Shown here one piece after another: positions 30,807-58,036 of a stretch of 64,000 bases of DNA. Every line of letters starts with the position of its first letter. Position 1 is the first letter of the stretch. The notes under the pieces were generated by a model. That model ran no database searches and had not been told where the DNA came from. It saw only the letters and a program-made list of their open reading frames with translations. Position numbers and translations under genes: made by a program. Origin of the DNA: Parasitella parasitica NRRL 2501 (Eukaryota > Fungi > Mucoromycota); assembly GCA_025201805.1 (NCBI GenBank), contig MU619309.1:1-64000 (forward strand), read 5' to 3'.

Positions 30807-32060
30807 CTACGCTTCGCTACGGCCCAAGATATCATTATTTGTCAAATCTTTCATTAATTCTTTGAATTTCAGTCGGAACACTCTTGAGCATAAATCTGGT
30901 CGGTCAGCAGCAGTTTGTCTAAACAAAAGCTCACTTTGTATTTCTGGCCAGTTAGGGTTGCAGGTGAATGATATAAAGTAATCAGGCTTGCCAAGCCGTT
31001 TTACAATACTCATTGAGTCTTGATATAATTGAGCCATATGTCTTGTTCCTTCAATGAAGGAGCTAGGAAGTATTACTTTCAGACCAAGAGAGTTGGTGTC
31101 TGTATCATCATGTGTAATTGCGTCTTGTAAACCACGATAGAGCTCAGAGCGAAGGCTGGATTGATTGTGACGAATAAAATTCAAACGAAACTGTTCAATT
31201 TTGGCGTACATGTCGACAATGTACTGGTGAAACAGTTTTCCAAACAAATGAAGACAATGATCGGAACCTCTATACATTAAACGAAAGCTGTAAAACTGCG
31301 AGGTAGACACCTTTATACCACTCTCTGAAACACAATCCATGGTCCATCCACTTTGCCCAGAAGGAGATAGCAAAACATAACCCATTGCGTCGTACATCTG
31401 ATTCAGCTCGCTAGCTCTTCGAAACCCGCCATCCTGAGGTCTGATCACAATATCTCGATACTTTGGTTGCTCATTGTCCTGCCTTCCACCGCTACCCAGA
31501 ATTAACACGCCTACCTCTGTTGAGGTCGTAGGTGCGTTATATCGTCGAGGATCAGGGGCTCCCTCAGCTCTAAAAACCATCGAAGCATCTTCTACTTGTT
31601 CAGGATATTCTCTTATAGATTGGGCCATTGTCTTCAAGTCTCGCACGATTGGATTGATTCGGTGCATTAAACGTTGTAGCTCCTCCAAAGTCTGAACATC
31701 TATATGGCTGGCTACTAAATTTCTGTTGCTGGTCCCATTGCTGGCATCATAAACATAAATCTGAGCAAATGCAGACAAACTATTCTCAATTGGAAGTAAT
31801 GACCCAATTCTATGGTAAATGCTTCCATGAATTCTGAATGCGAAAGCACCACCACGTGAATTTTGGACACTGCCATTGACGCGAAGCCAAGTGCGTTGTT
31901 ATAAGAGCGCACATTTTTCTTGAACTCTACGCCTCTACGATTGTTGTTTTGGACCACATCAGCAATGACTCGTGGTGTAGCTTCTAAAGGTGGAATAATA
32001 TATCGGCCTAAACTGCAGCTTAATTGGAATCTGGCGGTCGAAATTCCTCCCTCAGTACGC
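30807..32060 (-). mobile_element. Helitron Rep/helicase N-terminal fragment (truncated)
   Basis: FKKNVRSYNNALGFAS, FAQIYVYD, RRYNAPT, QYIVDMYAKIE, ILPSSF, PDYFISFTCNPNWPEI, DRPDLCSRVF; ends before the HUH motif. Confidence 0.92.
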
Positions 32061-33844: not shown

Positions 33845-35757
33845 TTAATCAGAGGCAGAGATCATGTTCTCGGGTCTGACCCACTGTTCAAACTCTTCAG
33901 AGTTCAAGTAGCCAAGAGAAAGAGCAGCTTCCTTCAAAGTGGTGCCTTCTTTGTGAGCTTTCTTGGCACACTTGGCAGCTTTATCATAACCAATATGAGG
34001 GTTAAGAGCAGTAACCAACATCAACGATTCATTCATGATGCTGTTGATCTTCTTTTCATTGGCTTGAATACCGACAACGCAGTTCTTGGTAAAGGAGGTA
34101 GAAGCGTCCGAAACAAGGCGAATAGATTGGATCAAGTTCTTGATCATAACAGGCTTGAAGACATTGAGCTATGTTCCATAAAGATTTAGCCCACAAAGAC
34201 ATGACTCGAATTAGAAGAATAACTTACCTCAAATTGGCCGTTAGAACCAGCAACAGAAACGGCAGTGTTGTTGCCCATTACTTGGGCACAGACCATGGTC
34301 ATGGCCTCGCATTGAGTAGGGTTAACCTTGCCGGGCATAATGGAAGATCCAGGTTCGTTCTCCGGTAAGGAAAGCTCGCCCAGACCACAACGAGGGCCGG
34401 AACCGAGGTAACGAATATCGTTGGCGATCTTCATGAGAGAACAAGCAACGGTATTGATGGCACCGTGAGCCTCAACAACAGCATCATGAGCTGCAAGAGC
34501 TTCAAACTTGTTGGGTGCAGTCTTGAAGGGAAGACCAGTGATATTGGCGACGGCATCGGCAACCTTGACATCGAACCCCTTTCTGGTGTTGAGACCGGTA
34601 CCGACAGCAGTGCCACCCTGAGCAAGGTTATAAAGACGTTCCAAAGTACCTTCAACACGGGCAATACCGTAAGTTAGTTGCTGGGTGTAACCAGAGAATT
34701 CTTGACCAAGGGTCAAGGGGGTAGCATCTTGCAAGTGAGTACGGCCAATCTTGATAATGTGATCGAATTCCTTGGACTTGGCGTCAAGGGCATCGCGCAA
34801 AGTCTTCAAAGCGGGGATGAGACGGTGAGTAATCTCGACAACAGCAGCTACGTGCATGGCGGTAGGGAAGCTAGTTCAGATTAGATGCTGATTAACCGCC
34901 ACTGTTTGTATATCATGACTTACGTATCGTTGGAAGATTGGCTCATATTGACATGATCATTAGGATGGACGGGAGTCTTGGAGCCAAGCTCGCCACCGAG
35001 AAGCTCAATAGCACGGTTGGAAATAACCTGTTCATCCATATTAATTTCGACTCTCACTCACCCACTTTGCCGTCTTTCCAATGCCTTACCTCATTGACAT
35101 TCATGCTAAATGTCCCAATTTAAATCAGTAAACAGGCACAAACTACCAACACACCATCCTAGACTTACTTGGTTTGAGTACCAGAGCCAGTTTGCCAGAC
35201 AACAAGGGGGAAATGATCGATTAAACTGCCATCGATAACCTAGTGGATTCATTTAATAGGTTGCATTTCTGCCCAAAAAAACATCACCTACTTCGTCGGC
35301 AGCCTTTTGAATAGCCTCGCCAACCTTGGGGTCCATGCCATAGGTCATATTGACAGTAGCAGCAGCCTTCTTGAGAACACCGAAAGCTCGAATCAAAGGC
35401 TCGGGCATGCGTTCATTCTTACCGCCGATATCAAAGTTCTGGAGAGATCTGCCATCATGTTGCTGTGAGCTTCATCGAAATGTGAATGTCTGCGTGTGTG
35501 GTTTTACCTTTGTGTCTGAGCACCCCAATACTTGTCAGCAGGGACCTGGAGATCACCAAAGGTATCACGCTCAGCACGGAATTTTTGCTATAAAAAGGTT
35601 GAAAGTTTAGATAACCGAGATAATCAGGTACCACACATCTCGGAAGTGAAATTGATGGCCTACTTACCAAAGCAATGGAAGCGCTGCTGAAAAGGCGGCT
35701 AGAGCGGTTAAGAGCAGAAGCCTGGCTCAAAAACTTGGTCGAAGTAGCACGCAACAT
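33845..35757 (-). CDS. FUM1: Class II fumarate hydratase with mitochondrial presequence, multi-exon
   Basis: [39 protein letters not shown], signature [15 protein letters not shown]. Confidence 0.97.
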
Positions 35758-42460: not shown

Positions 42461-43996
42461 ATGGAACAGTACTTGTTACAGCAAGGAAGTAAAGTCAAGA
42501 TTGATAATAACATATTTGTTACTTCAAATTACACAACTGCAGGAACAACACTTTTAACGCAAGCGCCATTGGCCTCGGTGCCGTTCCCTTCGGAACGATT
42601 GGACCGATGTAACTACTGCTTGCGAAAAGGGAATCTCCAATGTTGCTCAAAATGTCACTCTGCATATTTTTGCAGCCAGGAATGCTTCTTGAAATCATGG
42701 ATACATTTTCATCGAGGTTTATGCGGCCTGGCCGATTATAGCAAAGACGCCCTGCTAAATGTAGATCAGTGGTTATTGGACCGCACTGCATTAACCTTGG
42801 CTAGTTTTGACACATTACCGACAAAGACAAATGTCCAAATACTGGCACTCAATCAATTGGAAGTTGTAGCAGCAAACGATACTGTGGATCGGCTACTTGT
42901 ACAAAGCGCAAAGGAAAAACTTGGCGCAATTGCACACTACACACTTTCAGAACTATCCATATTATGGCAGCGCGTCCAAATCGCATCATTTCCAATCACA
43001 GACTCTGACATGCAGCTGGACCCTGTCGCCGTGGGCATTTATCCCATCACCAGCCAGTACGTCCGTCATTCATGCCGTCCTAATGCAAGCGTTATTTATG
43101 AACAGGGTCATCAGCTCATAATCGCTCTAGAAGATATACCTCAAAATGCACCCATCACTATCAGCTATGTCGATCTTATCGCTACAAAAAGCCAAAGACA
43201 GGAAGCATTAAAAGCAAGATTTGGCTTTGATTTCCATTGTGATTGTATCCGGTGTCAAGGAGACTATGCAGGACTCGATCGTTTGTTAGAAAGAGATACG
43301 GACATGACAGATGAGCACATCGAGCAAACACTGTTGCAGCAATTAAAAGCTTGGAGTGTGTTGGAGATGGTTAGAGAATACGGGAGCAAAGACGTTGCTA
43401 TGCCATTAGAGAGCCTGGATGCACCACATCTAGCTCATTTCATCTGCAGAATGATTGCACCCGACATTTACGTGCCAGCGTTCAGTAACAAGAGATCAAC
43501 AGCGGCTATGTACTACGATAAATTGTCGCCACTAACGCAGTTAAAATACACTTGCGATGAGGATGCTCGGCGCATTTTACCAGCCATTGAAGCGTTGTTG
43601 GGTATACCGCCAACGCCATTTCTGACTATCCGAGCAGTCAAAATTGCAGAAAAAGTGCTCTCACGATGCATATCAGAATCGAAATGGGTGGAAGCTTCGC
43701 GCTGTACAATATATTTATACATGCTCTATCGATTGGTGTACCCCACACTCTACCCCAAGATGGTCTATCATAGTTTACTCATGGCAAGAGCATGTTGGAA
43801 CTCGTTGGTGCAATTAGAATTGGCTGGGATAGGCAAGAAATTGGAGCGTATTTATGAAAAGGGTGTCCAGTTGTGGATTGAGGCAGCGAAAGCTTCTATT
43901 TCAATGACATTTGGACGAAATTCTTTGCTGTGGAGAGAAGTTGCAGAGATACAATGGCTGTTTGAAAGAGACCAAAAACTGAAGCTAACGTGCTAG
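42461..43996 (+). CDS. SET and MYND domain protein (SMYD-like), intronless
   Basis: MYND finger CNYC...CSKCHSAYFCSQEC...H...C; SET-like RHSCRPN and ITISYVD; post-SET FHCDCIRC. Confidence 0.88.
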   Translation: MEQYLLQQGSKVKIDNNIFVTSNYTTAGTTLLTQAPLASVPFPSERLDRCNYCLRKGNLQCCSKCHSAYFCSQECFLKSWIHFHRGLCGLADYSKDALLNVDQWLLDRTALTLASFDTLPTKTNVQILALNQLEVVAANDTVDRLLVQSAKEKLGAIAHYTLSELSILWQRVQIASFPITDSDMQLDPVAVGIYPITSQYVRHSCRPNASVIYEQGHQLIIALEDIPQNAPITISYVDLIATKSQRQEALKARFGFDFHCDCIRCQGDYAGLDRLLERDTDMTDEHIEQTLLQQLKAWSVLEMVREYGSKDVAMPLESLDAPHLAHFICRMIAPDIYVPAFSNKRSTAAMYYDKLSPLTQLKYTCDEDARRILPAIEALLGIPPTPFLTIRAVKIAEKVLSRCISESKWVEASRCTIYLYMLYRLVYPTLYPKMVYHSLLMARACWNSLVQLELAGIGKKLERIYEKGVQLWIEAAKASISMTFGRNSLLWREVAEIQWLFERDQKLKLTC

Positions 43997-44361
43997 AAAA
44001 AAAAACACCATGGTAACGAGAGGGTTCTGAGAAGTGTTTTCTTGGTGATCGTTGCAAATGAATCCAAGTCGTTTTGCAACCTTGGAATATTTGCTCAAGG
44101 ATTGGTACAACTGACAATATGCGAATTTTAATAAAGAAAAATCCCACGAATATTGTATTCATGTGATGTAACTCTTGTGATATTAACCTTATTTGGGACC
44201 TGAAGAGATAAGATAATAGCGTCTGCACTAGCATGAATGTAATACATACTTTGCGTTTCATGGCGATTACTTGTTTGTTTATAAATGTGCGTGCTTTTTT
44301 CCCCTTCTTCTGTTCGTTTCTTCCCTCTTTTTTTTTTGACTATTATCTGATACAAAAGCAC

Positions 44362-47089
44362 ATGTCCATCTTAAAGGTATTTGCGTCTAGATTCTAACAA
44401 TATGCAGATGTGTTGAAATATCTGTCCGTGTATATAGTACGCTGCGTCTTCCCCTTCAAGACTTCTTTGGCCATCAATCCAGAGGAATACACATTCGGGC
44501 ATCAGGCTGTTCTCCCTTGATTCCCAGCAGCAGCAAACTATGGGCCTAGTTTACGAGAAGATTGATGATAATATCATTACCGTGAAAAAGAGGTATGTCA
44601 CGTATTGTACAAAAGAACAAAGAAAATGCCAACAAAGGCCATAGGTTAAACCGCCCCTTGACGTTATCTGAGAAAATTCTATACGGGCATTTGCATGAAC
44701 CCCACACTCAGGAAATCGTGCGAGGATCTTCTTACCTGAAGCTCTTTCCCGATCGCATTGCTTGCCAAGACGCCACTGCTCAAATGGTTCTCTTACAGCT
44801 CATGGCTACCGACATTTCTCGAGTCCACGTCCCTACCACAATCCACAGTGACCATTTGATCGAAGCACAGCGAGGGGGCAAAGCCGATTTATCTCGAGCC
44901 AAGTATATCAACAAGGAGGTGTACGATTTCTTGGCTAATGCATCTGCCAAGTACGGTATTGGATATTGGAAAGCAGGATCTGGTATAATGCATCAAATTT
45001 TACTCGAGAATTACGCATTTCCTGGCGGACTCATGATAGGCACTGATTCTCACACTTGCAATGCGGGCGGCTTGGGCATGCTGGGCATTGGTGTAGGCGG
45101 CTCTGATGCTGTAGATGTGATGGCTGGCAAAAGCTGGGAGTTGAAATGTCCAAAAGTCATTGGTATCAAGCTAAACGGTCATCTTTCGGGCTGGGCGTCG
45201 CCAAAAGACGTTATTTTGAAGATAGCCGGTATACTTAGTGTGAAAGGTGGTACAGACAGCGTGTTGGAGTATTTTGGAGAAGGCGTCGAGTCGATTTCTT
45301 CCACAGGTATGGCAACTATCTGCAATATGGGTGCTGAGGTAATGATAAAATACGTAATTGGTTGAAAAAAAGCATTTATGTTGTGTATGTTGCCCTATTA
45401 GGTTGGTGCTACATCCTCCGTATTCCCATACAATCAACGTATGAGCGACTTCTTAAAGGCCACGGATAGACAACAGGTTGCTGGTTCAGCAGAAAAGTAT
45501 GCGCGTAACTTGCAAGCAGATGAAGATGCCATGTATGATGACTTGATTGAAATCGACCTTTCAACATTGGAACCTCATGTGAACGGCCCGTTCACCCCCG
45601 ACTTGGCGACGCCTTTGTCTTTGTTCAAAATGCGTGCGAGACAAGAAGGCTGGCCTGAAACACTTAGCGCTTCACTTGTTGGCTCAGATACAAACTCGTC
45701 TTATGAAGACATGAGCAAATCTGCCTCCATTGTGCAGCAAGGTTTGAACAAGGGACTTAAATCAAGAGTACCGTTCTTGGTAACGCCAGGATCTGAGCAA
45801 CTAAGAGCGACTCTGGAGCGTGATGGACAATTGAGTTTATTTGAGCAAGTAGGCGGTACCACCTTAGCTACAGCATGTGGCCCTAGTATCGGTCAATGGG
45901 ATCGCAAACAAACTTTGCAAGGGGAAAAGAATTCAATTATGATTTCTTATAATAGAAATTTTTCTGGAAACAACGATAGTAACCCTAACACTCACGGGTT
46001 TATAGTATCTCCCGAGGTAACTGTTATGGAATGGTTCACATGTGTACGAAGATGACTAAGGAAACTTATGCTTTAGATTGCAACAGCCATGGCATTTGCT
46101 GGAAAAATTACATTTAACCCTATGACAGACTCCATGGTGGGATCAGACGGAATCCCTTTCAAATTTAAGGCACCTACCAGTCCTGATATTCCGCCCAAGG
46201 GCTATGCCGCTTACAGCACTGACATGTACCAAGCTCCTCCAGAAGATGGCTCGGATATCGAAATCAATATCAATCCTCACTCGGACAGACTTCAGATTTT
46301 GCCTCGATTCCCTGCTTGGGACGGAAAAGATTTCGAATCATTACCTATTTTGACCAAAATCAAAGGAAAATGTACCACTGATCACATCTCCATGGCAGGC
46401 AAATGGCTCAGATATCGTGGGCATCTAGAACACATATCCAACAACCTCTTGATTGGGTCTACAAATTCAGAAGGTCAAGTCAATCAGTCTGTCAATGTCT
46501 TTACAAACGAGACAGCTTCTATTCCCGAAACAGCCCGCGATTATAAAGCTAGAGGCGTATCCTGGGTCATCATTGGCGAAGAGAATTATGGTGAGGGTTC
46601 ATCTCGTGAGCATGCTGCTATGGAACCAAGATATTTGAATGGTCTCTCGGTCATTGCAAAGGTAAATAGCAGTTGTTAAAAGACCCTCTGAAAAGATAGA
46701 ACATTGACCGTTCTTACTCTGTATATACGCAGTCTTTTGCTCGTATTCATGAAACCAACCTGAAAAGAAATGGCATTCTGCCACTCACTTTTAGTGTTCC
46801 GGATGATTACGAGAAGATTGACCCTTCTGATAGAGTCAGTATTGTTGGCCTGACTAATATCAAACCAGGAAATCCCTTGACATTGCGATTGCATAAAAGC
46901 ACAAACACTACGATCGATATTCCTTTAACTCATACATTTAACCAAGGTAAAAAAAAAAAAAAAAAAATCAAAAAAATCAACGATCTTCAGGAACTACTTA
47001 ACACTAACATCTTTGATACGTATTATATAGAACAACTTGAATGGTTTAAACAAGGTTCAGCTTTGAATGCGATGACTCTTGATAAATAA
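44362..47089 (+). CDS. Mitochondrial aconitase paralog with non-canonical Fe-S ligand positions, 7 exons
   Basis: [65 protein letters not shown]; introns 44377-44437, 44593-44644, 45339-45401, 46017-46076, 46662-46732 and 46947-47030 give an uninterrupted ORF. Confidence 0.93.
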
Positions 47090-47099
47090 TAAAATTGAT

Positions 47100-48890
47100 G
47101 TATAATAGTCCTTTTAAATCTGAAGATTTCTTGAAAGGAAGCTGGTTGAGCATAAAAAGCTTCATTTGATATCGCGGCGATATTGAGGAGTGTTTCATTT
47201 GTCGCATCCACATGATTAGCTAATCGGCGAAGAGGTTCAAACTACCACATAACGAAAGATCGAAGACAACACTATTGACATAGAGGAGGTGATCAATGAA
47301 CTTCGAAGCACGTATTTGCAGTTGTAAGATGATGGCTTTTTGCTTCTTTAGTTTCCTGACATAACCAAATCATCGATTGTACATTTTGTGTTTTTATTAC
47401 TTGCTCCGCGTAAATTACAGAGTTTTGAGTGTAATCAAGCGGCAGGCGCAATCATCAATTATATAAGATATGAAGGATAAGATACGAAGAATAAAGTATA
47501 AAATGGATAAAGGATAATATAAAATAAAATAAAAATTATAAAAAAAGAAAGTATAGAGAGAGAGCCTATAAAGAAGCATGAACTTGATCTTCGTCGATCA
47601 ACTTGGAGATGTCGAGTCGGATACTGTTCATTACGGCAGCGGTTTCGAAAGCCTTCTGGTTAAAGACAAACCGGTAGTGAGCCCTCCAAATGTTAGCCAG
47701 AGTACAACTGTACATTTTGATTAAGCTGCAAGTTTAAATTTGTCGCTGTAGATCTTTTCGGAACTGGACGAGGCCCTAGCAGCTTCAATATGGCATGGGT
47801 CAACAACCTTGGATACCTTGCATACAATTCTACCGTCAACTTTATAGCTTATAGTATGCGGCTTATTGTCATTGTTTATACGCTTTACTGCAGTGGTGGT
47901 ATCAATTGACCTTTCTTCCCAATTGACATAGAGTTCAGAACTATTTCCAACCAAAAGTTCCAAGTTCCATAGCTTCATTAAAAAATCGGATTCGCTGATT
48001 TTGTTGGTTGGGTTTGTAAAAATGTATGTGCGTTCTCTGTATGCGTTGATGCTAGAAAATAGAACACAAGTCAGAAACTGCTCATATTAAAAAGAAGCTG
48101 TACTTACATATGGCCAAGGGCTTTAAAAATCCACTTATCAGCAGAGTGTACACCTCTTATGCTTTCAATAGCAATGTAGTAAGCTTCTTCTTCTTGTCCG
48201 CTCTTGATTTCCTTTATTATCTTTTCTACTTTCTCTTTGGTGGCATTAGATAGGTTTGGAAGGTGCTTTAATTTTTTTGATCCAAGCTCTTTTTGATTAC
48301 TAAGATCAAGGACACCATTAAGACAGAAGCCACAAAGCGAGTGCTCTTCAGCTGACAACGAGTTATAAACTTCATAGAGCTGTTTGCCATAAGACTTAAA
48401 TATTGATGAAATAGAGCGATCGTAAAAAAAAAAGATAATGCTATCGCCTTCCACAACATTCTAAAAAATACAAGTTGTCAGTAGATTGTTTTCTTGCAAA
48501 TAAATATCATGACCTACTTGATTGGCGAGCGACTGTGAGCTTCTTGATGCCGTTGTACTTTTGGAACTTGAGGCTCTCTTCCTTGTGTATATTTCATACA
48601 ACTTATTTTCATAATCGGCTTGTTATAGAACTGCTTTTTATCTTGGTATAAGATCCAGAATTCATCAACCTCATTTGCATTCATCAACTAGTTGAAATAT
48701 AAAAAATATGAATGTTAGATAATCGTGTTATAGTATTCAAATTAAAATGAAGCTAATATTACAAGAAAATTTTGGTCAACTTGTTCATGAATCAACTTGC
48801 TTACCACTGGATCTATAGCAGCTGGATAGAATGAGGCATTTTGTAAATCTTCTTCAAACTTATTTGCGACTTGTTCCCTTGACATCCTTC
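47100..48890 (-). pseudogene. Pseudogene of a Mucorales restriction-endonuclease-fold (PD-(D/E)XK-like) family protein, interrupted by a LINE
   Basis: SESDFLMKLW...SYKVDGRIVC...IEAARA...KIYSDKFKLAA*SKCTIDDL (the last part resumes beyond the LINE insertion); several stops. Confidence 0.55.
47389..47708 (-). mobile_element. 5'-truncated non-LTR retrotransposon (LINE) insertion with 11-bp target-site duplication
   Basis: ORF2 C-terminus CTLANIWRAHYRFVFNQKAF...HASL* (stop 47566-47568), pyrimidine-rich 3' UTR, AATAAA; flanked by TGTACATTTTG at 47378-47388 and 47709-47719. Confidence 0.85.
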
Positions 48891-55783: not shown

Positions 55784-58036
55784 ATGTCTCGCACACTCTA
55801 TGATAAAGTCTGGGATGATCATGTCTTTGATGAGCAAGATGATGGCACTTGTTTGATATATATTGACAGACACCTTGTACACGAAGTTACTAGTCCTCAA
55901 GCCTTTGAGGGCCTTCGTAACGCAAATCGTCCTGTGCGCCGTCCTGATTGTACTCTTGCCACTGTAGATCATAACATTCCCACCACAACCAGAAAAGAAT
56001 TTAAAAATATCACCAGTTTTATCAGGGAGACTGATTCAAGAATTCAATGTGAAACTCTTGAGCAAAATGTTGAGGCCTTTGGCCTTACTTATTTCGGTAT
56101 GGAGGATAACCGTCAAGGTATTGTGCATGTTATCGGCCCTGAGCAAGGTTTCACTCTCCCTGGAACCACCGTTGTGTGTGGTGATTCGCATACATCTACA
56201 CATGGTGCGTTTGGTGCTCTCGCTTTTGGTATTGGAACATCCGAGGTAGAGCATGTCCTTGCTACTCAAACTCTTCTTCAAAAGAAATCAAAAAACATGC
56301 GTATCCGTGTTCAAGGTGAGGCTCTTCCAGGCGTCACTTCCAAGGATATCGTTCTCCACATAATTGGTGTTATCGGTACTGCTGGTGGTACCGGCTGTGT
56401 CATTGAGTTCTGCGGTGATGCTATTGCTGCTCTGTCAATGGAATCCAGAATGTCTATTTGTAACATGTCAATTGAAGCTGGTGCTCGTGCTGGTATGGTT
56501 GCTCCTGACGAAATCACTTTTGAATACCTCCGTGGTAAACCTCTCGCCCCCAAAGGTGCTGAATGGGATTCTGCCGTCAATTATTGGAAGTCCCTCAGTT
56601 CTGACCCTGACGCCAAATATGATATTAACGTAGAAATCAATGCTGCTGATATTGCCCCCACTCTTACTTGGGGTACTAGCCCTCAAGATGTTGTGCCCAT
56701 TACTGGCTCTACCCCTGATCCAGCAAAGATTGAAGATCCTGTTCGCCGTTCTGCCGTCCAACGCGCTCTTGATTATATTGGCATTGCTCCCAACACTCCT
56801 ATGGAAGGTGTCAAGGTAGATAAGGTATTTATTGGCAGTTGCACCAATTCTCGTATTGAGGATCTTCGCGCTGCCGCTGCTGTTGTAAAGGGTAAGCGTG
56901 CTGCTGAATGGGTGGATGCTATGGTCGTGCCTGGTTCAGGTTTAGTAAAGCGCCAAGCTGAACGCGAGGGACTGGACAAAATCTTCACCGATGCTGGTTT
57001 TGACTGGAGGGAAGCTGGTTGCTCCATGTGCCTTGGTATGAACCCTGATCAACTGAAGCCTGGAGAACGTTGTGCATCTACATCCAACCGTAATTTTGAG
57101 GGTCGTCAAGGTGCTGGTGGTCGTACTCATCTTGTAAGTCCTGCTATGGCTGCTGCTGCTGGTATCAAGGGCTGCCTTACCGATGTTCGCAACATGGAAA
57201 TCTCTGAAATTCCTGGCACTCCTAAGCAAAGTCCTCGTCAAGAAGTTTCAGCCCAATTTGAGTCTGAAGATCAAGCTGAAGCTAGCTCCAGTGCGAACCC
57301 CACCGCTGCTGCTACTACATCAACCAGTGCTGGTGAATCTACTGGTATGCCCAAGTTTGATACTCTCAAGGGTTATGCTGCTCCTCTTGATATTTCCAAT
57401 GTCGACACCGATATGATTATTCCCAAGCAGTTCCTCAAGACCATCAAACGTACAGGTCTCGGTAGTGCACTCTTCTATGCTCTTCGCTTCGACGCTGCCA
57501 CCAAAGAAGAAAACCCTGACTTTATCCTCAATCAAGAACCTTATCGCCAAGCTCGCATCCTGGTGTGCACTGGGCCCAATTTCGGTTGCGGTAGCTCTCG
57601 TGAGCATGCTCCTTGGGCCTTTAACGACTTTGGTATCCGATGCATCCTTGCACCCAGTTTTGCTGATATTTTCTACAACAATTGCTTCAAGAACGGCATG
57701 CTTCCGATCGTCCTCCCTCAAGAACAATTAGAAGCCATTCACGCTGAAGCAAAGAAGGGAACAGAAGTTGAAGTGGACCTTATCAATCAGGTCGTTCATT
57801 TTGCCGGTAATCAAGTTGATTTTGAAGTAGAGCCTTTCCGTAAACACTGTCTTGTTAATGGCCTGGATGATATTGGATTGACTATGCAAAAGGCTGATAA
57901 GATTGCCGAGTTTGAAGTGAAACGCACTAATTTATGGCCCTGGTTAGATGGAAAGGGTTACAAAGGAAAGGCCACTAAAATCCCTGTCAATAGTGGTGAA
58001 GGCCATCAAAATAAGAAAACCAAGCTCGATTGGTAA
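55784..58036 (+). CDS. LEU1: 3-isopropylmalate dehydratase (fused LeuC-LeuD; leuA in Mucor), intronless
   Basis: [69 protein letters not shown]. Confidence 0.98.

Follow-up and report, generated by a model that had tools for sequence, protein, structure and literature searches.

An aconitase paralog of Parasitella and Mucor that lacks two of three cluster cysteines: a candidate pseudo-aconitase kept under selection

The window analysed here is a stretch of 64,000 nucleotides from Parasitella parasitica NRRL 2501 (contig MU619309.1). At positions 44362-47089 of its forward strand lies a gene for a paralog of mitochondrial aconitase which has replaced two of the three cysteines that bind the iron-sulfur (Fe-S) cluster, together with the substrate-binding Arg452. 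The same replacements are fixed in orthologs from several Mucor species, where the gene evolves under strong selection, and canonical aconitase genes stand elsewhere in the genome. The reading that we tentatively favour, with some reserve, is a cluster-free pseudo-aconitase that binds citrate-type ligands and acts as a sensor or regulator.

Residues of the Active Site

By homology to pig aconitase, whose numbering is used throughout, three irons of the Lewis-acid cluster have Cys358, Cys421, and Cys424 as their ligands and Ser642 is the base (PMC8184944). Exon 4 of the paralog was aligned with pig residues 263-467 without gaps and at a constant offset of 26, and the codons GAT, AGT, and AAC fall on Cys358, Cys424, and Arg452, as an earlier sequence-only reading of this DNA had claimed. 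The roles given below without a cited paper follow the pig aconitase structures. Across 119 other full-length relatives, positions 358, 424, and 452 are invariant and the ligand positions are 100% Cys. The changed positions, and the ligand that was kept, are as follows.

44787-44789, forward strand: Ala74 to Val, fixed in derived orthologs
44847-44849, forward strand: Cys99 to Ser, adjoining Asp100; the M. velutinosus ortholog has Cys
44988-44990, forward strand: Ile146 to Met, adjoining His147, fixed in derived orthologs
45057-45059, forward strand: Pro169 to Cys (DSHTC), fixed in derived orthologs
45687-45689, forward strand: Cys358 to Asp (GAT), cluster ligand, fixed in all derived orthologs
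45870-45872, forward strand: Asn419 to Thr, fixed in derived orthologs
45876-45878, forward strand: Cys421, the sole cluster ligand kept
45885-45887, forward strand: Cys424 to Ser (AGT), cluster ligand, fixed in derived orthologs
45969-45971, forward strand: Arg452 to Asn (AAC), fixed in derived orthologs

The four fixed pocket changes besides Asp358, Ser424, and Asn452 (Val74, Met146, Cys169, and Thr419) go beyond the sequence-only reading, as does the age of the lineage described below; all of these residues were found in 10/10 full-length orthologs. Asp358, Asn452, and Cys169 each lie two base changes from the ancestral codon, and the codons examined in the clade differ synonymously between orthologs. 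The cluster loop tolerates a further change, Thr359 to Ile, in the M. ambiguus ortholog. Considering that archaeal LeuC/HacA proteins with three intact ligands have an equivalent of Cys169, this residue need not be a new ligand, and we did not accept it as a proven replacement.

The rest of the site appears to be conserved: by alignment, the paralog keeps the acid/base residues and most of the substrate-binding residues. Gln72, Ser166, Arg447, Arg580, Ser643, and Arg644 are invariant in 10/10 ortholog proteins, so that among the substrate arginines 447, 580, and 644 are kept and 452 is Asn. The ortholog proteins are likewise invariant at Ser642 and at the residue pairs Asp100/His101, His147/Glu262, and Asp165/His167. 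The retention of Cys421, His101, Asp165, Glu262, Arg580, Ser642, and Arg644, put forward in the sequence-only reading, is borne out by this alignment. Of 20 non-cluster active-site residues 1 has changed, compared with 62 among the 398 conserved sites as a whole (binomial about 0.16, calculated by hand); measured by this background change rate of 16%, the retention is not significant.

Gene Model and Transcript

The gene has 778 codons in seven exons, with 0 internal stops and six introns of 52-84 nt, all GT-AG, in agreement with the intact 7-exon frame first described.

44362-44376, forward strand: exon 1, start of the presequence, Arg/Ser-rich and acid-free
44438-44592, forward strand: exon 2, remainder of the presequence and N-terminal helix
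44645-45338, forward strand: exon 3, keeps Gln72, Asp100/His101, His147, Asp165/Ser166/His167, and Glu262
45402-46016, forward strand: exon 4, domain binding the cluster
46077-46661, forward strand: exon 5, keeps Asp568, Arg580, Ser642, Ser643, and Arg644
46733-46946, forward strand: exon 6
47031-47089, forward strand: exon 7, includes the stop codon

The region 44000-47400 showed 0 differences in three DNA runs, one of which may be the run that the assembly was built from. A spliced contig of 2,399 nt, from a run that is probably RNA, matched the gene with 0 mismatches and skipped five introns at the listed joints; removal of the sixth is implied by contig pieces, its junction lying inside a masked A-rich repeat. 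The transcript check proposed along with the sequence-only reading thus found a probable spliced message. The contig depths (587 for the paralog, 3,746 for a canonical ACO1 paralog, and 102 for the upstream SET/MYND gene) are a poor measure of expression and indicate presence only. A sequencing error, against which the sequence-only reading had argued, was ruled out by the identical DNA of the three runs, the mismatch-free spliced contig, and the same residues in six Mucor species.

Database searches with the window gene were performed exon by exon, and the joined model was used only for local alignments, trees, and codon counts. For the full-length search, the family scan, and the structure prediction, the orthologs P0176 and P0191 were used instead of the window protein.

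Orthologs and Selection

Searching exon by exon and looking up protein clusters brought out orthologs in six species (M. circinelloides, M. lusitanicus, M. velutinosus, M. fragilis, M. ambiguus, and M. plumbeus), and in the public annotation they are named aconitate hydratase or hypothetical protein. In the longer ortholog loci the paralog is flanked by the same two genes as in the window.

42464-43996, forward strand: SET/MYND gene, upstream synteny marker, on a separate transcript contig
55787-58036, forward strand: LEU1 isopropylmalate isomerase, downstream synteny marker

LEU1 has all three cysteines (GSCTN and CSMC), just as the sequence-only reading stated.

When the M. ambiguus protein was searched at full length, identity fell from 90% to 65% with nothing between, and because of this gap the annotated genomes of Rhizopus, Choanephora, Thamnidium, M. 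mucedo, and comparable fungi appear to have no member of the derived clade, a result that covers the best-scoring candidates only and is not proof. Scans of JGI metagenomes gave no matches. Codon-pattern scans of prokaryotic genomes found no residue other than Cys at position 358, although they had no internal positive control and one of them skipped codons that begin with T; the Asp codon pattern for this position recovers the fetched ortholog loci.

Selection was measured as pairwise dN/dS, the ratio of nonsynonymous (dN) to synonymous (dS) substitution rates (NG86, about 655 codons). Between the deepest lineages of the derived clade dN was 0.057-0.064 and dS 1.1-1.6, giving a dN/dS of 0.041-0.052, and close ortholog pairs gave 0.036-0.065; the canonical ACO1 paralogs of the same species pair gave 0.019 and 0.036. 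No ortholog contains a stop codon. With dN/dS of 0.04-0.07 at dS up to 1.6, the gene is not a decaying pseudogene. The conservation of Asp358, Ser424, and Asn452 at dN/dS below 1, proposed in the sequence-only reading as a check, was found in all orthologs (dN/dS of about 0.05). Within the derived clade, 94% of the conserved-and-unchanged sites are invariant versus 68% of the conserved-but-changed sites, and therefore the fixed new pocket residues are consistent with selection, not far above background.

Origin of the Lineage

A sister gene was located on three contigs of Mucor-like fungi with low GC content at third codon positions (L013, L014, and L023). It is 75-76% identical to the paralog and has canonical residues at all eight sites, with the three cysteines intact; a SET gene lies upstream of it on L013 and L014. 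Of 271 conserved sites, 22 are changed in the sister gene, 2 in a canonical paralog, and 42 in the P. parasitica paralog, and by these counts the sister lineage was already evolving faster with its cysteines intact. No annotated genome with this cysteine-retaining form was found.

In the trees, the derived clade (100/100, stem 0.57-0.62) joins the sister gene at 100/100, and the next relative is a paralog of Radiomyces spectabilis, again with intact cysteines (100/99). The Radiomyces gene and the paralog have common introns after residues 57, 288, 493, 688, and 759; the canonical Mucor ACO1 genes are without those after 288, 493, 688, and 759. Trees and introns agree in pointing to an old, intron-rich third ACO1 lineage, in which the loss of the ligands would be a later event, placed on the stem of Parasitella plus the circinelloides/plumbeus group. 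The common introns may have been inherited from an ancestor, and attraction between long branches can occur. An origin of the paralog as a recent duplicate of the two canonical ACO1 genes was ruled out by the tree and the intron positions. The canonical ACO1 genes of P. parasitica itself (loci L008 and L009, on C23 and C115) are nearly intronless beyond the N-terminus, and their open frames run to 733 and 730 aa.

Family Placement and Predicted Structure

The ortholog P0191 of M. circinelloides matched TIGR01340 over its full length with 1111 bits (cut-off 825), and the Pfam families Aconitase and Aconitase_C were also matched. Judged by these profiles, the paralog belongs by descent to the mitochondrial aconitase subfamily. 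Judged by its residues, it fails as a catalytic aconitate hydratase (EC 4.2.1.3), an assignment that calls for three cluster cysteines and four arginines. The AcnA models scored far below cut-off and identity was 21-23%, so the protein is not of the IRP1/IRP2 type. The test for aconitase X, a family with Cys in place of His147 and a Cys-X-Cys motif, was negative as well (His147 kept, identity 12-14%, template modelling (TM) score 0.34).

The predicted structure of P0191 had a mean confidence (pLDDT) of 83 and a TM score of 0.92-0.93 to pig aconitase, and the four-domain mitochondrial aconitase fold is thus predicted to be kept; prediction from the single sequence gave a pLDDT of 34. The first 32 residues of six orthologs contain 4-6 Arg/Lys, 0-1 acidic residues, and 8-9 Ser/Thr, which describes composition only.

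The sequence-only reading had also proposed a search for a canonical ACO1 elsewhere in the genome, and two such genes are there (C23 and C115), 64% identical to the paralog and with all ligands intact. The genome has in addition an Aco2-type gene (C36), with Lys at the position of Arg580, a residue that marks the Aco2 type (PMC3556520), and a homoaconitase-like gene (C79). With these four genes present, the tricarboxylic acid (TCA) cycle's needs and those of lysine synthesis are covered. An Aco2 or homoaconitase identity of the paralog itself was ruled out, since Arg580 is kept and the protein is placed outside the Aco2 clade. PrpD (PF03972) and PrpF (PF04303) had no match in the genome, in an exon-wise search that can miss genes, and the methylcitrate cycle may be absent. 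In aerobic and anaerobic RNA-seq of M. lusitanicus, two other aconitase models, 153298 and 186385, drop roughly tenfold when oxygen is lacking and the ortholog, 152093, is not in the differential list (PMC9031258); this is weak evidence, which hints at a regulation of the ortholog separate from that of the TCA enzymes.

Possible Function of the Paralog

Without Cys358 and Cys424 no normal [4Fe-4S] Lewis acid would be held, so that normal turnover of citrate and isocitrate would be lost; the yeast Aco1 single mutants C382S and C445S are described as catalytically inactive (PMC3770056). Normal aconitase activity of the paralog is therefore unlikely. Taking into account that the fold is predicted to be intact and that Gln72, Ser166, Arg447, Arg580, Ser643, and Arg644 are kept, the tricarboxylate pocket probably survives. 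We propose that a spare old ACO1 paralog became a pseudo-aconitase on the stem of the M. circinelloides/M. plumbeus/Parasitella clade. The protein would be imported into mitochondria, where Asp358, Ser424, Thr419, Met146, and Val74 would fill and stabilise the empty pocket and citrate, cis-aconitate, or isocitrate could bind independently of iron. Ligand-driven closure of the cleft might then act on a putative partner, making the protein a metabolite sensor or regulator alongside the two catalytic ACO1 enzymes.

Several points weigh against this proposal. The base Ser642 and the acid/base pairs are invariant, and a mere ligand binder would not obviously need them, though their retention is not statistically significant. 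Through the two-step change of Cys358, a position that binds metal has acquired Asp, itself a classic ligand of metals, and Cys421 is retained. The P0191 model drew on an alignment of canonical aconitases and came with no coordinates, so that the geometry of the pocket lies outside its reach. The partner and the mitochondrial localisation are putative.

The first two of these points suit a close rival, rather unlikely when taken by itself, in which one divalent or ferric ion on Asp358 and Cys421, perhaps joined by Ser424, Met146, or water, replaces the cubane. The product would be a hydro-lyase tolerant of oxidants or iron shortage, acting on citrate-like or other hydroxy-acid substrates, with the loss of Arg452 rebalancing the charge or changing the substrate. 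The invariant acid/base residues and the two base changes behind each of Asp358, Asn452, and Cys169, all then fixed, speak for it. The superfamily has moved its metal centre before, as aconitase X binds a [2Fe-2S] or [3Fe-4S] cluster by way of cysteines other than the usual ones, and for it a mononuclear Fe(III) site made of Glu and two Cys had been proposed; nevertheless, every solved aconitase X centre has three Cys (PMC8184944). The active-site retention, at background level, and the archaeal counterparts of Cys169 count against a rebuilt site too, and the gene context suggests no substrate. The old ligand positions are, moreover, spaced for a cubane. That an oxidant-sensitive [4Fe-4S] cluster has in this manner been exchanged for a single metal in a still working hydro-lyase, whether as an aconitase independent of Fe-S or as a new dehydratase of hydroxy acids, we regard as doubtful. 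A weak or conditional aconitase, still holding a [4Fe-4S] or [3Fe-4S] cluster through Asp358, Cys421, and Ser424 (or Cys169), would agree with the predicted fold and the intact catalytic residues, and single Asp or Ser ligands occur in other Fe-S proteins; we know of no precedent for a cluster whose three protein ligands include a single Cys. Considering also that one Cys-to-Ser change is enough to inactivate yeast Aco1 (PMC3770056) and that Arg452 is lost too, this appears improbable.

The sequence-only reading offered either a non-catalytic protein (nucleoid, RNA-binding, or a citrate/iron sensor) or an altered metal site. That choice stands, although its nucleic-acid branch is weaker than was implied. 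Yeast Aco1 binds mitochondrial DNA and reportedly maintains it independently of catalysis (reviews PMC6124551, PMC11431987), and the presequence is conserved in the orthologs, so that the paralog might be a split-off moonlighting role dedicated to the nucleoid or to mitochondrial RNA. Nonetheless, it has fewer basic residues (Lys+Arg 66-68 versus 74-80 in the canonical paralogs; pI about 5.8), the growth medium may account for the rescue that cluster-less yeast mutants gave (PMC3770056), and IRP1-type RNA binding belongs to the distant AcnA branch; we give this role a small probability. A metal-free catalyst, with Ser642 as base and His101 as acid, for instance in cis/trans-aconitate isomerisation, would make use of the kept acid/base residues, of a scaffold that binds trans-aconitate (1aco), and of the missing PrpF/PrpD matches; positive evidence for it is nil, empty exon-wise family searches do not prove absence, and it seems very improbable. 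The long stem branch and a rate somewhat above that of the canonical paralogs are what a decaying pseudogene or an assembly error has in its favour; against the open frames of the orthologs, a dN/dS near 0.05 at dS above 1, the spliced transcript, and the DNA of the three runs, its probability is negligible.

Comparison with Known Systems

With the mitochondrial enzymes ACO1/ACO2 (TIGR01340; pig structures 1aco and 7acn) the paralog has in common its descent, fold, presequence, acid/base residues, and most substrate-binding residues, at 59% identity to pig aconitase and about 64% to fungal ACO1. It differs from them in lacking two cluster cysteines and Arg452 and in its further fixed pocket changes, and normal activity would be unexpected. 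The nearest functional precedent, by analogy, is AcoB of Aspergillus, an extra fungal aconitase that is constitutively expressed and for which neither activity nor a deletion phenotype was seen in the tested conditions (PMC3556520). In contrast with the paralog, which is ACO1-derived and has lost its ligands while keeping Arg580, AcoB belongs to the Aco2 clade and retains virtually all active-site residues and carries the Arg-to-Lys change (PMC3556520). Aconitase X illustrates that an aconitase scaffold can shift its metal ligands and change its substrate, but it is prokaryotic, distant in sequence, and still has three Cys and an Fe-S cluster (PMC8184944). Apo-IRP1, IRP2, and the engineered cluster-less yeast Aco1 have cluster-independent roles on the aconitase fold; in these the cysteines are kept or were removed in the laboratory, and the IRPs are cytosolic and of AcnA type, whereas the ligand loss described here is natural, fixed, and in the mitochondrial branch. 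Pseudoenzymes and re-sited metal centres are already known kinds, to which this natural loss adds a variant. No published description of the paralog was found in a literature search poor in subscription journals.

A catalysis-independent job of mitochondrial aconitase has so far been argued from engineered yeast mutants, on disputed evidence. Here a natural, separated copy that would be unable to hold the normal cluster is under strong selection, and cysteine-retaining sister genes bracket the change. Its ortholog MUCCIDRAFT_152093 sits in the genetically tractable M. lusitanicus. A catalytic protein would instead mean an enzyme of the aconitase fold that works on a single one of the normal cysteine ligands. 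Either way, the public naming of these proteins as ordinary aconitate hydratase is open to doubt, and metabolic models of Mucor are affected by this. The finding is limited to one fungal clade, and the function is predicted from sequence.

Neighbouring Genes and Gene Models

The 90% protein cluster of P0191 mixes aconitase orthologs with neighbouring SET/MYND proteins, which suggests a fused public gene model somewhere; in P. parasitica the transcripts of the two genes are separate contigs. In another locus (L022:16165-19241) a public model of 1040 aa joins LEU1 to the downstream CMAS methyltransferase, probably an annotation error, the two being separate genes in L021. On the reverse strand of the window, at 34189-34875, an exon of a Lyase_1 family gene resembling class II fumarase lies upstream of the paralog by about 10 kb, and together with LEU1 this makes three hydro-lyase genes within 25 kb. 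Also on the reverse strand, at 30810-31898, a 363-aa open frame matches Helitron_like_N (E 1.6e-46) and is probably a Helitron remnant.
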